This document shows positions 7,079-13,570 of a stretch of 64,000 bases of DNA, in pieces. The stretch covers positions 186,001 to 250,000 of the forward strand of contig OW569361.1 of assembly GCA_937625935.1 (NCBI GenBank), read 5' to 3'. Below the pieces are notes generated by a model. It was not told the origin of the DNA and made no database searches. It saw only the letters and a program-made list of their open reading frames with translations. How positions within the stretch are numbered: the stretch's first letter is position 1; each line of letters begins with the position of its first letter. The position numbers and the translations under genes were made by a program. This DNA comes from Tetramitus jugosus (taxonomy: Eukaryota; Protista; Heterolobosea).

Positions 7079-7551
7079 TAATACTAATACTAATAAATAT
7101 CTAAAATTGAATCAATGAACTTCGTCTATTACGTATTGCACAACCTGTAATTTTCTATGTAGCCCGTTTCCCCATCCCCTTCAGGAGGAACTCCTATCTG
7201 AGCCAAAAAATAGCTAAATCCCACGCTACCACAAATACTAGTTGCGAGTGAGGGAAATTCAACAACCTGGAAGAACAATCGACTCTACCCACGAGTGCCT
7301 CCCAACCACCTGACCAGGCCCTTTCATCGCGAAACTTGCATTCAGCAGATCGCTCAATCAAGTCGCTGATAGATCTCTTAATCAAGATGATTGGATCTTC
7401 ACTACTCTGATGTGGCTCTCTAATGTACCGAACAGTTCAGACGGTAGTAATCCAGTCAACAATCGATCGCAATAAATTTGATCTTCAGTGGAAATTCTTT
7501 CTAGAGGGCTGTAAATTGAAGATAACGGTCCGGGGAACCGAAATTCCGCCA

Positions 7552-7569
7552 GTTGGTTTGAGGGAGTCT
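7552..7569 (+). promoter_or_regulatory. Conserved upstream motif of repeat unit 1 (GTTGGTTTGAGGGAGTCT)
   Basis: 16/18 identical to 9774-9791; lies 162 nt upstream of ATG 7714 versus 164 nt for the paralog; both are preceded by TGTAAAT about 40 nt upstream. Confidence 0.5.
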
Positions 7570-7713
7570 TCTGAAGGAAAGTCCGACCGATCACGTCACC
7601 TCTGCAGTGTTTTTGTTGGGAGCAAACCACCAACAACCAGAAACAAACACAATCTCTTCAATTTACACCCTTTACGTAAACTGCTTGCTGTACCTGCACT
7701 CTCTTCTATAAAC

Positions 7714-9063
7714 ATGAATTCTCCTGCTCTCTCTGTTCATCCTTTTCTCCCACGACAAATTTCAAGTGTCAATCCCTGGGAAGTCATCTCCATGACGGTG
7801 GCCCAACAAAACCAAAGCTCTCGTCTGCCATTTTACTGGTATCTGAAAGATTTTGGCCAAGAGTGGATTGACAATTCTTTGAAAACACCTATCCCAAGAA
7901 ATATGATCGTCATGAATGCATTGCTTTGGAATGGTTTGCCATTATTGATTGAATTTAAGTTTGGGACACAAACCAACACGATTATTCCACTCTTCTGCAA
8001 TGCTTTTGAAGCTAAACCAGGCCGAAAATCCAAGAGAAACCTAAAGGGTGCTGTCAAGGAAAATACTTTGGGAGAACAGTTAAGCCAATCCAATGGGTCC
8101 AAATCCAAATCCAAACCTTGCACCACCATGTTTGTCCGGTTGAACCCAGAAGTGTCACACGAAGATGTGACATTTTTCATCGACATGCACAAAGGGCAGT
8201 TCACATGGAAACAAATGTCAGGTTGTCGTTTACAACCACACAAGAATGGATTCAAGGTTATTCCCACTCAATCTCTTTCCTCAGGTGCCGAGCTTCCCCT
8301 ATTGAGATTAAGGATGATGTATGGCGGCCAAATGTACATCATTTATCACTTTGGCTTTGCAAACGGAGGTTCTGGAGGAAGATCAAGGAAGTATCTTGAG
8401 AAAACCGCATTACCTATATGTACGACTGTGTCTCTGTTCACAACTGTGGATGATGTATTCGATCATTTGTTAGCAGGAGGATCACTCATCCCACAAGTGC
8501 TCGAACAACCACAGCAAGAAAACAACCATTTGCAGGTATCTGAAACTGCATGCCAATCAGATGTCATGAGAGTACTTGCCAATGAATCTTTGGATCAAAA
8601 ACAGGAAGAGGGTTTGGTTTCCAATGAGGCTGGAATCATTCAACCCATGCCGCACGAGCCAGAGACTTCCAATGTTGAGTCTTTGAGGGATCAAAATGAT
8701 CAGGGCGCAGTCTATGTTGATGACTGCAGTGAGTATTTGAATTTTCCCAGTTGTGATATCAGTTTGATCTCCAACTACGGTCAGAACAGTTTCTCCTCTT
8801 TGGATGAGATTGGAGAGGAAAATGAGGATGAAGACAGTGTAGAACCTGCCTCTAAACGTCGAAAACTGGACACCCATGTGTTTTCTAGCAGCAATAGCAC
8901 CACTTCTTGTCTGATGAATGACATTGCAAACAACGGCAATTCTCCAGTCGCTCCAAATGCGACGTATTTGATAGGTCATCAATCAATTCATAGTAATTCC
9001 ACTGAGGTATCCTCAGTGGAGTTATCTATGAGTGACATGATATATCAAGTAATCAGACAATAA
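7714..9063 (+). CDS. Uncharacterised protein, family copy 1: conserved beta-rich N-terminal domain, acidic tail, NLS-like PASKRRKLD
   Basis: Part of ORF 7423-9063; ATG 7714 chosen because homology with the 9938 paralog starts there. Shared blocks FxFGTQxNTxxPLF, SGCRLQPHKNGF, PLLRLRM, FGFANGGxGGRS. Confidence 0.8.
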   Translation: MNSPALSVHPFLPRQISSVNPWEVISMTVAQQNQSSRLPFYWYLKDFGQEWIDNSLKTPIPRNMIVMNALLWNGLPLLIEFKFGTQTNTIIPLFCNAFEAKPGRKSKRNLKGAVKENTLGEQLSQSNGSKSKSKPCTTMFVRLNPEVSHEDVTFFIDMHKGQFTWKQMSGCRLQPHKNGFKVIPTQSLSSGAELPLLRLRMMYGGQMYIIYHFGFANGGSGGRSRKYLEKTALPICTTVSLFTTVDDVFDHLLAGGSLIPQVLEQPQQENNHLQVSETACQSDVMRVLANESLDQKQEEGLVSNEAGIIQPMPHEPETSNVESLRDQNDQGAVYVDDCSEYLNFPSCDISLISNYGQNSFSSLDEIGEENEDEDSVEPASKRRKLDTHVFSSSNSTTSCLMNDIANNGNSPVAPNATYLIGHQSIHSNSTEVSSVELSMSDMIYQVIRQ

Positions 9064-9077
9064 GGTGCTACTGCTGA

Positions 9078-9274
9078 TGGAAAATTCAATGAATGACTAC
9101 AATGGCCGTGATGAGCCGCTGGAATGAAACGACAAGGGCAGAGTCTAGTAGTTCCTTCTTCAAGTTATTTACGAGGGTAGTAAATAACTTGAAGAAGGAA
9201 CTACTAGACTCTGGACGTTTGACTTACATTCCAGCAGCTCATCACGGCCATTGTAGTCATCTTTGTATTTTCCA
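9078..9274. repeat. ~197-nt fold-back hairpin (candidate structured/small-RNA precursor), copy A
   Basis: 9139-9172 is the exact reverse complement of 9180-9213 (34 bp, 7-nt loop); 9093-9126 pairs with 9227-9260 (33/34); basal TGGAAAAT/ATTTTCCA. It starts 15 nt after the stop of the 7714-9063 gene. Confidence 0.92.
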
Positions 9275-9773
9275 AATGAGTCATCCTTTTATCCAAGATA
9301 TCGATACACCCCCATGTTCAATGATAAAACCCCTTTTGATCACTGTTTATTGCTCACAAGTGTCTCAACACAACTTTGGATGCGTACTATCTTGCTTTCG
9401 CAGCCCCGGCCATTTCACAAGGATCACAACAACAACAAAATGAGTAGAATGGGGGTTTTACTGAGATATTTCAGTCAAATTATACATGAATGACATGCAA
9501 TACCAAGTTTTCGGAAGATGCTATTATTGATAGAACATACAAGAATGGTTCTCAAGCCGCTAGTTTCTAGGATGGTATTCCAAGAACACCTTGAATCGTT
9601 CAAGCAGCCATCTTGTTAATGATCCGAGGTATCCATAGACTACCTTTCTAGACAAATGACGCATGAGTCATATGACATAATATGAAGCTCTATAAATGTT
9701 TTACTTTACACATCTACACTTGTGCGAGTTTTATTGTAAATCTCCCAACGCTTTTCCTTGCGAGAAGGATCAG

Positions 9774-9791
9774 GTTGGTTTGAAGGGGTCT
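9774..9791 (+). promoter_or_regulatory. Conserved upstream motif of repeat unit 2 (GTTGGTTTGAAGGGGTCT)
   Basis: Matches 7552-7569 at nearly the same distance from the start codon. Confidence 0.5.
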
Positions 9792-9937
9792 CGCCTGTTT
9801 GGCGGTCCTCCTTTTTCGCCCTTATTATCACAAAATAACCAAAAAAACGACCAAACATCACATCTGACAAGTAGCACCTGTACTACAACCACGACTGCTT
9901 TTTCTCGATCAATTCAACCACCCTATCATCATCGACA

Positions 9938-11355
9938 ATGATTTGTTCTGTGCCCCCTGTTAACCCTTTGCTCTTTCAAGTTGTTTTATTTGTTGTTAAA
10001 ACATGGGAAATAATTGCCATGAAAATGATGCAACAAAAGGACCAATTACCCCCGGCTCATACCTCGTACGACTCTTTCCTCATGAACAACCATGCAAAGC
10101 TCAAAAATTTTTTGCAAAACAAGCTTCCAAGGGACTTTATGTTCGAGAATCCACCTCTCTCGAATGATGATCCTTTCGGTCGTAAGGTCCTGGGCAAGTT
10201 TCGATTTGGGACGCAATGCAACACACCTGTACCCCTCTTTAACAAAAAAGGTACTCTGATCTTTGTTGAATTGAATGCACGACTTGAACAGGTGGCCATG
10301 TTCATTGACAAGCGTACACATGAGTTTCAATGGGAACAAGTGTCCGGTTGTCGTTTACAGCCACACAAGAATCACAAGAATGGGTTCAGGATTATCCCCA
10401 CTGAACCTATCTGCTCAGGTAGTACTCCATTTCCTCTGTTGAGATTAAGAATGGTGTATGACGAAGAACCATACATCATTTATTACTTTGGGTTCGCCAA
10501 TGGAGGTGCTGGAGGGAGATCTGACAAGTATATCGAGCAGACAATCTCAATATCTTTGCCTGTGCATCAGATACTCTCCTCAACTGTGGATCAGGTTTCT
10601 ACTATGCGTTAGGAGGCACACTCACAGTCCCTCCACAGGGACTTGACCAACAACTATCACAACCACTAAAACAACAGCATCAATGGGATCAGAGAAGTCA
10701 TGGAGTCAGAGCAACAAGAGACGACGATGCTTCTTATCCACTTGAAGATCAGCCGCCAACCAAGCGAGCAAGAACATTGGATCAACAACCACACAACGAC
10801 AACTTACCAAGCCCTGAAACAAACATTCCGTCGTCAGATGACATCAAAGAAAGGATTCAGCAAGTTGAGGACCCTTGGTATTACAATGATCAGGAGGAAA
10901 TCACTATTGACTATTTGATGCGCTCTGATGAGATTGATGAAATGCTGCAGCAAATGGACGAACCAGTTCAAGAAACTTCCGTGAATAATTCACTGAATGA
11001 TCAAAACGATCAGGAAGATACAACAGAATCAAATAGTTCTATTGAGACATCTTTGAATTCGCTCACTCCTGACTTTGTTTTGATTGACATGAATGTCGAT
11101 GAACAAGACAACAATCAATCACTTTTTGATGGCTTAGAAGAAGGAAACGAGGACAAAGAGAGAGCAGAGCCTGCCTCCAAACCTCGAAAAATGGACACCC
11201 ATGTTCTTTCTAGCAGCAAAAGCACCACTTCTCGTCTGATGAATGACATTGCAAACAACGGCAATTCTCCAGTCGCTCCAAATGCGACGTATTTGATAGG
11301 TCATCAATCAACTCAATGCAGTTCCACTGAGGTACCACCTCAGTTCAATTGTTGA
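9938..11355 (+). pseudogene. Family copy 2, split by a single 1-nt frameshift at about 10596-10598 (pseudogene or sequencing error)
   Basis: ORF 9938-10612 is homologous to the N-terminal domain of copy 1. Adding one T in GTTTC restores DQVFYYALGGTL (copy 1: DDVFDHLLAGGSL) and reads openly into ORF 10777-11355, whose end (PASKPRKMDTHVLSSSKSTTSRLMNDIANNGNSPVAPNATYLIGHQS) is nearly identical to copy 1. Confidence 0.75.
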
Positions 11356-11433
11356 TGAGCGACATGATATATCAAGTAACCAGACAATAAGTTGCATTGC
11401 TGATGGGAAATGCAATTGTACCTGCCACGGCCT

Positions 11434-11700
11434 CCACAACAGTAGATGAGATTTTCAATCATTATTAGGAGGCCCACTCATCACCACAGGAGCTTGAATA
11501 ACAACAGATGATGCTTCTACCCAGTTGAAGATCAACCGCCAACCAAGACATCGATGAACAAGATAACAACCAATAACTTTTTGATGGCTTAGAGAAAGGA
11601 AACGAGGACAAAGAGAGAGCAGAACCTGCCTCTAAACCTCGAAAACTGGACCAGCAATGGTGGCGCTTCCAATGTGACTAATTTGATAGATTTATCAAAT
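11434..11700 (+). pseudogene. Internally deleted relic (copy 3) of the 3' half of the same gene family
   Basis: Collinear fragments matching copies 1/2: ACAACAGTAGATGAGATTTTCAATCATT (TVDEIFNH), GATGATGCTTCT...GAAGATCAACCGCCAACCAAG, GATGAACAAGATAACAAC...GGAAACGAGGACAAAGAGAGAGCAGAACCTGCCTCTAAACCTCGAAAACTGGAC; contains stops and large gaps. Confidence 0.85.
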
Positions 11701-11701
11701 A

Positions 11702-11906
11702 GGGAAAATACAATTATGCTAGCCATGGAGCCGCGAGTTCCTGGAGTGGGATGCCAGGACAGACCCGGTAGTTTGTGCGTGAGGATCTTCTTGAAAAATC
11801 AACCAATCGATTGGTTCAAGAAGAACATTACGCCACACTACCGGGTCTGTCCTGGGCATCCCACTCCAGGAACTCGCGGCTGGTGGCTAGCATGATTGTG
11901 TTTCCC
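11702..11906. repeat. ~205-nt fold-back hairpin (candidate structured/small-RNA precursor), copy B
   Basis: 11729-11755 pairs perfectly with 11855-11881 (27 bp); 11756-11772 pairs with 11837-11853 (17 bp, one bulged G); basal arm GGGAAAATACAATTATGCTAGCCA / TGGCTAGCATGATTGTGTTTCCC has U-G wobbles on the + strand; apical palindrome AACCAATCGATTGGTT. Confidence 0.92.
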
Positions 11907-12064
11907 AACCAAACAAGTGCTCCCATTGCCCACCAGCATGTCCCTCGCTAAAATCCATGCAAAAGCTTTTTTGTAAATAGTTTACTGGCTCAATACCCAT
12001 CTTTTTTTGATCACCGCTTATTTTGAAAGCACCGAAATCAAATCAAACACGAACAATTACAACA

Positions 12065-13570
12065 ATGACAACAATGCTTCTCGCTCATCTCTCCTCTGTT
12101 GCCATTCCACACATTTTCGTCATTTTGTTCTCTCTCGGTTTCTGTGCCTCACTGTGTTTCTCACACTCGGCTCCCACACCCAAAGCCGATCGGCGAATTA
12201 TTCAAGTAACAGTTTTATCCCGACACTGTGACAGGACTCCCGCACATGAGACGGGAGGAATTCCAAAGAATCCAGTCAACTGGAAGAAACAACTTGGAGT
12301 TGATATAGGACAGCTAACTGGACTCGGTGAACACCAGTGCTATGAAATGGGAAAGGACTTGAAGAGTCGTTACTTGAATTCGTCTTCGCCATTCGCGATC
12401 CAAGGAATCAACCCTGGTGATGCAGTTCATTTGAACGGAATAACCTTGTATGATCCGAACATTTTTCAATTCCATGCCTCCAATGTAGATAGAACCATCG
12501 TTTCAATGTACTCCATCATCCAGGGTATGTTCCCAGAAGGTACAGGACTCATGGATGACTTGATTCAACAGTATGCGCTGCCTCATGGGATAGCGGTGGC
12601 ACCCGTGCACACTGTTCCCAACGGAGATGATATTTACCTCAGAGCCATTCACAACTGTGGTGTGATTGATAAGAGAGTAAAAGAGTTGCCAACGACCGAC
12701 ACATGGAAAGCTCTGAACAAGAAATGGATTCCATTTGTTCAGAGTCTGAATGAGCCAACAGGTCTCAACATGACCAATATCGATGAGTTTCATGCAGCTT
12801 ATGATGTATTGAACTGCCAAAGAAGCCATAACTTACTTCACATTAAAGAAGTGTTGGATCAATGGGACACAGTCCTACAGCTGGCCTCCGAAATTCAATT
12901 CATGAGGCATTCACGAGAATTGCAGAGCAATTTAGGTGGAGGTCCATTCATTGACAAGGTGCACGAGCAAATGAAGAGTGCAATAGATGCACAAAAAGAT
13001 GACAAGAAACAACAAGCAACAGAAACAGCAGTTCCCAAGTATGTGCACTACTCGGCACATGACACCACCATTCAATCCATATTCTCAACATTGAACATGT
13101 CTGACAACTACAAGGCATTGCAGCTGGGTCCCAAGTATGGAGCACAGATCGTATTTGAGCTTTCTCAGCAAGGAGATGAATACTTTGTAACGTTTTTATA
13201 TAGAGATGTATTCAATGGAGAGTTTCGTGCCTATAAACTCCCAAAGTATTGCACCTCTGATGCATGTACATGGAATGAATTTACAAGATATATTACAGAG
13301 GTGAGCACAGTTCCAATTGATAGTTGGTGTCACAGATGCAACAGCAATCGAAAAGTAGGAACATGCGCACTGATTGTTGTACAGGAGCCTCAGCATCATC
13401 GCACAGCATTGATCATTACTGTTGCGCTACTTGTTATGACTCTCTTAATTGTTACACCAGTGACTTGCGTACTCGCAACTCGTCGTTGCACACTCGCTAG
13501 AAAAGATACAAGCAACATTAGTGAACGAAATTCACTTCTTGCTGTCAATGATCGATACCGTAGACACTGA
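12065..13570 (+). CDS. Histidine acid phosphatase (lysosomal/prostatic type), signal peptide plus C-terminal TM
   Basis: RHCDRTP (RHGxRxP variant), GQLTGLG, SNVDRT and YSAHDTTI catalytic motifs; hydrophobic N-terminus and a TM near the C-terminus. Start codon approximate. Confidence 0.92.
   Translation: MTTMLLAHLSSVAIPHIFVILFSLGFCASLCFSHSAPTPKADRRIIQVTVLSRHCDRTPAHETGGIPKNPVNWKKQLGVDIGQLTGLGEHQCYEMGKDLKSRYLNSSSPFAIQGINPGDAVHLNGITLYDPNIFQFHASNVDRTIVSMYSIIQGMFPEGTGLMDDLIQQYALPHGIAVAPVHTVPNGDDIYLRAIHNCGVIDKRVKELPTTDTWKALNKKWIPFVQSLNEPTGLNMTNIDEFHAAYDVLNCQRSHNLLHIKEVLDQWDTVLQLASEIQFMRHSRELQSNLGGGPFIDKVHEQMKSAIDAQKDDKKQQATETAVPKYVHYSAHDTTIQSIFSTLNMSDNYKALQLGPKYGAQIVFELSQQGDEYFVTFLYRDVFNGEFRAYKLPKYCTSDACTWNEFTRYITEVSTVPIDSWCHRCNSNRKVGTCALIVVQEPQHHRTALIITVALLVMTLLIVTPVTCVLATRRCTLARKDTSNISERNSLLAVNDRYRRH

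Follow-up and report, generated by a model that had tools for sequence, protein, structure and literature searches.

The window analysed here is a stretch of 64,000 nt (C18:186001-250000) from the soil amoeba Tetramitus jugosus CCAP 1588/3C (Heterolobosea). It contains a tandem cluster of an orphan gene and two hairpins of about 200 nt, designated A and B, with the following features (coordinates in the window).

7423-9063, + strand: gene copy 1, a 546-codon ORF encoding an orphan protein with a predicted beta-sandwich domain, an acidic low-complexity tail and the NLS-like motif PASKRRKLD
7552-7569, + strand: first site of an 18-nt upstream motif common to copy 1 and copy 2
8985-9035, + strand: small hairpin across the last codons of copy 1, with a weaker homologue at ~11310-11360
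9078-9274, + strand: hairpin A, beginning 15 nt past the stop codon of copy 1; 86 pairs, 1 of them G-U
9334-9351, + strand: 18-nt 3' flank motif behind A, found genome-wide only here and behind B
9460-9656, + strand: decayed unit C, with a gene-end relic (9460-9547) and a B-like 5' arm (9533-9590, ~72% to B); no RNA coverage
9774-9791, + strand: second site of the 18-nt upstream motif, ~60-80 nt 5' of the RNA-contig starts (9853-9856)
9938-11355, + strand: gene copy 2, its ORF split in the assembly by a frameshift near 10600; the reading frame is open there in the wild relative P0002
11405-11416, + strand: 12-nt stub of a hairpin 5' arm behind copy 2, the remainder lost at the junction with the relic of the third copy
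11430-11701, + strand: relic of a third, deleted gene copy, now within the 3'UTR of copy 2 and running directly into B, with continuous RNA-type coverage
11684-11892, + strand: absent from one X4 contig (depth 22.9), which joins 11683 to 11893 at a 4-nt direct repeat; ends TG..CA
11702-11906, + strand: hairpin B, 0 nt past the third-copy relic; 90 pairs, 4 of them G-U
12005-12022, + strand: 18-nt 3' flank motif behind B, directly preceding a histidine phosphatase gene

The true start of gene copy 1 is probably later than 7423. Compared with window 7423-8130, the first half of ORF 1 in the wild contig L011 differs by indels of 2, 7 and 6 nt, and because two of these shift the frame, the N-terminal part of the ORF may be free of coding constraint. 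The gene tails (8814-9090 versus 11139-11416) are 87% identical and the folded domains ~74%; judged from this alignment, the excess identity of the tails appears to be recent conversion between the copies. In the small gene-end hairpins, the arms match better in copy 1 than in copy 2 (8985-9035 and 11310-11360), as after a local template switch, and the wobble pairs are found on the sense strand. A short piece at ~10670-10782 was matched in several runs with long unlike flanks, at a very high X4 depth of ~620, and is a motif common to another, highly expressed locus. A scan of the window for bacterial promoters and terminators stayed at background level and is not relevant.

Pfam holds no family for the gene product, and protein searches revealed homologues only among near-identical JGI sequences, the matches in P0003-P0005 being repeat-driven noise. 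No relative of the protein was found in viral contigs, and the Atlas search was blank. Within the genome, a conserved, undescribed domain of ~110 residues occurs at seven places (window 7939-8460 and 10064-10609; C32, C42, C44 and C51; L054-L058), with the invariant residues W, C, P-x-x-R, G-x-x-N and R-x-x-x-Y. The domain is predicted to be a beta-sandwich. Fold searches returned generic, non-specific Ig-like beta-sandwiches (Z at most 7.3), with Velvet (Z 6.0) and NFAT/NF-kB listed but not standing out. The architecture, with its acidic tail and NLS-like motif, suggests that the gene product is a transcription factor, and the domain is possibly a lineage-specific DNA-binding domain.

In the C32, C42 and C44 members the domain is located at the C-terminus. 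The C51 paralogue has the same layout as the genes of the window and carries a 3'UTR hairpin (L056:385-545, minus strand; C51:102372-102532; z -7.6) with a 16-bp perfect stem, unique in the genome and with no detectable sequence homology to A or B. In a wild strain this hairpin holds 4 of the 6 differences in the 3'UTR, three of which break pairs, and its inner stem varies more than any other part of the UTR. No such hairpin is present in the four other family members; the flanks of the C32, C42 and C44 members were examined and contained none. A hairpin of ~20 bp was also observed at L056:2360-2404, ~60 nt past the end of the gene that lies upstream of the C51 paralogue, which suggests that hairpins of 15-25 bp in 3'UTRs are no rarity in the T. 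jugosus genome.

An earlier note, made from the sequence of the window, had described the two hairpins at 9078-9274 and 11702-11906, and both were recovered by a stem search and by folding. Hairpin A consists of an outer stem (9093-9129/9224-9260; 37 nt, 95% paired match) and a perfect inner stem of 34 bp (9139-9172/9180-9213). Hairpin B has 27 perfect pairs at 11729-11755/11855-11881, within these a stem of 22 nt at 95%, and a base of 23 nt at 87%. The minimum free energy is -137.9 kcal/mol (z -20.7) for A and -164.9 kcal/mol (z -21.0) for B, and none of 200 shuffles was as stable. No other 200-nt fold of the window comes near the stability of the two hairpins (-153 and -109, the next being -63; mean -41, s.d. 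10); the background for hairpin frequency in the genome covers ~108 kb only. An assembly artefact was rejected, as the arms are imperfect, are common to the paralogue and are present in independent wild DNA samples, both hairpins being contained in groundwater and soil DNA runs.

The two hairpins had also been called homologous. The score of 5' arm against 5' arm was reached in 4 of 5000 shuffles and that of whole against whole in 5 of 3000, which points to a homology that is real but modest; it is further supported by the same position behind a gene, the same stem base and the 18-nt 3' flank motif limited to A and B. Their divergence is ~30%. In the alignable part (9079-9153 versus 11703-11773, 75 nt), 43 pairs are identical and 12 carry two-sided changes; 3 changes are one-sided, all of them G-U, and 10 pairs are open in one copy. 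When uncoupled mutation was simulated at the same divergence, the mean was 0.7 two-sided changes, with a maximum of 6 in 20,000 runs. The claim that substitutions appear on both arms together thus stands in its total (12 versus 3, far over the null), but two of the four examples given for it depend on the alignment chosen: GCCGTGA/GCCGCGA allows a second register (GAGCCGC is common to 9113 and 11728), and CTTCTTsAA lies beyond an indel of ~10 nt, where the alignment is uncertain. The excess of two-sided changes over the uncoupled null supports the view that structure was kept while the sequence diverged. The shared stem base and flanks show a single origin of the inverted repeat, ahead of the duplications and as part of the duplicated unit, so that the arms truly changed in step.

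Selection on an RNA fold and arm-to-arm conversion had been proposed as alternative causes of this pattern. The two are not exclusive, and it is conversion that fits as the source of the covariation. Stepwise compensation in RNA goes via G-U pairs and favours transitions. Only 5 of the 176 pairs of A and B together (3%) are G-U, indels of 1 nt and 3 nt are present on both arms, and transitions (8 of the 11 clear two-sided changes, against 52% in the background) are not in significant excess (p 0.15). Because of these three observations, we consider it probable that each change, and each indel with it, was carried from one arm to the other by template switching or gene conversion, a process that would give a pattern without G-U intermediates. 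The wobble pairs, few as they are, tend toward the sense strand, those of the small gene-end hairpin included, in numbers too small for proof. Template switching has been described as giving rise, in stems, to matched indels and to two-sided changes of several bases (PMC8794818). Since DNA copying yields the same pattern without selection, the covariation shows coupling, not selection on the RNA fold.

Two broken copies lie in the cluster beside the two intact hairpins. In unit C, between genes 1 and 2, the 5' arm leads into an apical mini-hairpin (9590-9604), the 3' arm is missing and a homologue of the 3' flank follows; in shuffle tests the score of the 5' arm against B was reached in 0 of 3000 and that of the 3' flank in 4 of 3000. 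The other is the stub behind copy 2. With its two intact and two broken copies, the cluster is a natural illustration of how strong covariation along a long stem can result from DNA copying, and strong covariation alone should not be taken for selection on an RNA fold.

Contigs of four runs, which tell neither strand nor level, were placed on 8600-12200. Run X4 is from the same organism, its library type not being on record, and X9 is a soil metatranscriptome; both were treated as RNA-type because their depth is zero across the intergenic 9326-9809 and their contigs begin near 9853. X4 coverage runs unbroken from 9853 to ~11745 (gene 2 and the relic), drops over B and resumes at 11893, and an X9 contig spans 11780-11985. 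B therefore lies inside a transcript. Over A there is no X4 depth and little X9 depth; the JGI contig L011, presumably of RNA origin, runs from gene 1 into A, and A probably lies inside a transcript as well. Position and RNA-type contigs together support a dsRNA element in the 3'UTR, one of the possibilities raised earlier, for B and probably for A.

Besides the stretch skipped over B in X4, L011 skips 9130-9199 within A at a 3-nt repeat; it also carries G9121A, which changes one side of a pair in A and so disrupts it (one contig). Spliced introns were rejected for the skips, as the ends are not GT-AG. Reverse-transcriptase template switching at structures typically leaves skips of this kind (PMC4176328), and loss of RNA-seq signal across the arms is known for Drosophila hpRNAs (PMC10317233). 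The depth of the X4 joint, 22.9, is that of the non-reference haplotype contigs (21.8-25.6), so a genomic loss of B from the second haplotype and a template switch by the reverse transcriptase are equally likely explanations.

The genome encodes four tandem-RNase III proteins, one of them with PAZ and dsRBD, a fifth protein in which one RNase III domain was detected, two Argonautes and three RdRPs; Dicer and Argonaute are thus available in the host. The five RNase III genes differ in layout (C4, C12, C15, C29 and C41; L015-L022), PAZ being detected only in the C12 one, and form an expanded Dicer/Drosha-like set for a heterolobosean. One adenosine deaminase gene was found, possibly that of the tRNA enzyme ADAT1.

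The reading that we favour, at somewhat less than even confidence, is that A and B are cis-acting dsRNA of the 3'UTR, an hpRNA-like Dicer substrate kept paired by DNA copying. One inverted duplication would have produced a stem of ~95 bp immediately after the stop codon of an ancestral gene, Tetramitus-specific and transcription factor-like, and the unit of gene and hairpin was then duplicated in tandem, as the shared stem base, position and flanks show. The copies would have diverged while template switching or gene conversion carried each change from arm to arm. Transcribed in the 3'UTR of the mRNA (shown for B, likely for A), the hairpin could be cut by a Dicer-type RNase III, which would remove the poly(A) end and yield siRNAs against the same mRNA, keeping the regulator low or short-lived. 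Any siRNAs would act on the same mRNA because the stems match only themselves. Under selection for such a role, each transcribed gene copy would keep one intact hairpin and surplus copies would lose theirs. This is the distribution observed: one intact long stem stands at the end of every transcribed gene copy, and the untranscribed unit C and the surplus stub have lost theirs; the case for selection is drawn from this retention and loss. The 3'UTR hairpin of the distant C51 paralogue also counts for the cis-acting reading. The possible deletion of B on one haplotype, the G9121A change, the pair-breaking variants of the C51 hairpin, the seemingly not rare occurrence of shorter 3'UTR hairpins and the inferred nature of the transcription factor role count against it, and it is weakened by covariation that, arising from DNA copying, needs no selection. 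A broader version, in which a heterolobosean family of beta-sandwich transcription factors has built-in 3'UTR hairpins that are cut by Dicer into self-silencing siRNAs and repaired by template switching, is possible but doubtful. If true, Heterolobosea would have a first defined substrate of endogenous RNAi, and the mRNA would be self-limiting by design.

The same data could be explained by a neutral quasi-palindrome in DNA that was spread by tandem duplication, homogenised by template switching, slowly deleted and transcribed merely as 3'UTR. The mutation pattern is that of DNA copying, two of the four copies are already broken, B is possibly deleted on the second haplotype, and the arms are conserved no better than the 50 nt of gene relic directly before B, all in agreement with neutrality. 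However, both intact copies persist over ~30% divergence, also in wild groundwater and soil strains, and because long inverted repeats are prone to deletion, this persistence counts against a neutral palindrome. Moreover, the 3' flanks beyond the 18-nt motif can no longer be aligned whereas the arms still can, and a perfect mRNA duplex of 34 bp is unlikely to be without effect in a cell with Dicer and Argonaute. Neutrality seems to us possible but less likely than the cis-acting reading.

Descent from a foldback transposon or MITE that had inserted behind the ancestral gene ahead of its duplication would concern the origin only and be compatible with either the cis-acting or the neutral reading. 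The length of ~200 bp, the palindrome over the whole length and the sharp shared ends (GGAAAA...TTTCC) resemble such an element. Many dispersed copies with target-site duplications had been named as one finding that would speak against an RNA role. Searches of the genome by blastn, pattern and covariance model, which score best candidates only, revealed no further hairpin copies, and a pattern scan of metagenome contigs for the shared arm motif gave 24 matches, none with a hairpin or real homology. Visual inspection of A, B, C and the stub revealed no target-site duplication, although age could have erased one. An active family is disfavoured on both grounds, and we regard an origin from such an element as improbable. 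The hairpin small-RNA family that the earlier note had envisaged comes down to two intact hairpins in a single tandem cluster, together with two broken copies.

Its suggestion of miRNA-like precursors lost ground. Size and shape fit the long precursors of plant or amoeba type, from which one precise duplex would act on other genes; Dicer-type and Argonaute proteins are present, and miRNAs occur in unicellular Amoebozoa (PMC11014262). However, the longest word shared by A and B is 7 nt and their best 21-mer matches at 15 of 21 positions, so that no mature sequence is conserved between the paralogues. A blastn search of the genome for a trans target gave self matches only, where weak or short matches could be missed, and the Rfam matches were sub-threshold and generic, reflecting a mere hairpin (best 41.6 bits versus a gathering score of 101.7). 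With no shared 21-nt window and no target found, a miRNA role is quite unlikely. Still less probable is a Dicer-independent structure acting on 3' end formation, export, translation or editing via dsRNA-binding proteins, to which the position at the stop codon, the small hairpin immediately ahead of it (whose G-U pairs are on the sense strand) and the conserved 18-nt motif behind both stems could point, but against which stand the single, possibly ADAT1, adenosine deaminase gene and the four family members that lack such a hairpin.

Among known systems, stems maintained by template switching (Monttinen and Loytynoja 2022, PMC8794818) share with A and B the multi-base two-sided changes, the matched indels and a long stem; they were described in rRNA and miRNA, in stems ranging from a few pairs to tens of pairs, whereas A and B have ~90 pairs and are paralogues ~30% apart. 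Foldback transposons and MITEs are likewise palindromes of ~200 bp over their whole length, but A and B lack dispersed copies and target-site duplications and are bound to one gene cluster. The miRNA precursors of Amoebozoa and other protists (PMC11014262) are also hairpins, in a unicellular amoeba with RNAi machinery; A and B differ from the amoebozoan ones in having no mature sequence conserved between paralogues and in belonging to a different supergroup. The Drosophila hpRNA/endo-siRNA loci (PMC10317233) are long, near-perfect, lineage-specific inverted repeats born in tandem paralogue clusters; they show a drop in RNA-seq across the arms and have Dicer and Argonaute available. A and B likewise form an extended duplex from a long inverted repeat, and transcription is seen for B in X9 and X4 and weakly for A, in the low X9 depth and L011. 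Drosophila hpRNAs are, however, mostly stand-alone non-coding loci whose arms match a target gene or transposon, whereas the stems of A and B lie in the 3'UTR of a protein-coding gene, are not complementary to any separate gene or transposon at blastn level and have a putative siRNA output. Because a separate target is missing and small RNAs from the stems, the key criterion, are only predicted, A and B are described as hpRNA-like stems and not classed as hpRNAs. For endogenous RNAi substrates in Heterolobosea, the literature yielded only miRDeep predictions in Naegleria fowleri and no study of a hairpin locus. Such substrates are thus almost undescribed in this group, and A and B, in a cultured strain, are ready test cases for small-RNA sequencing.
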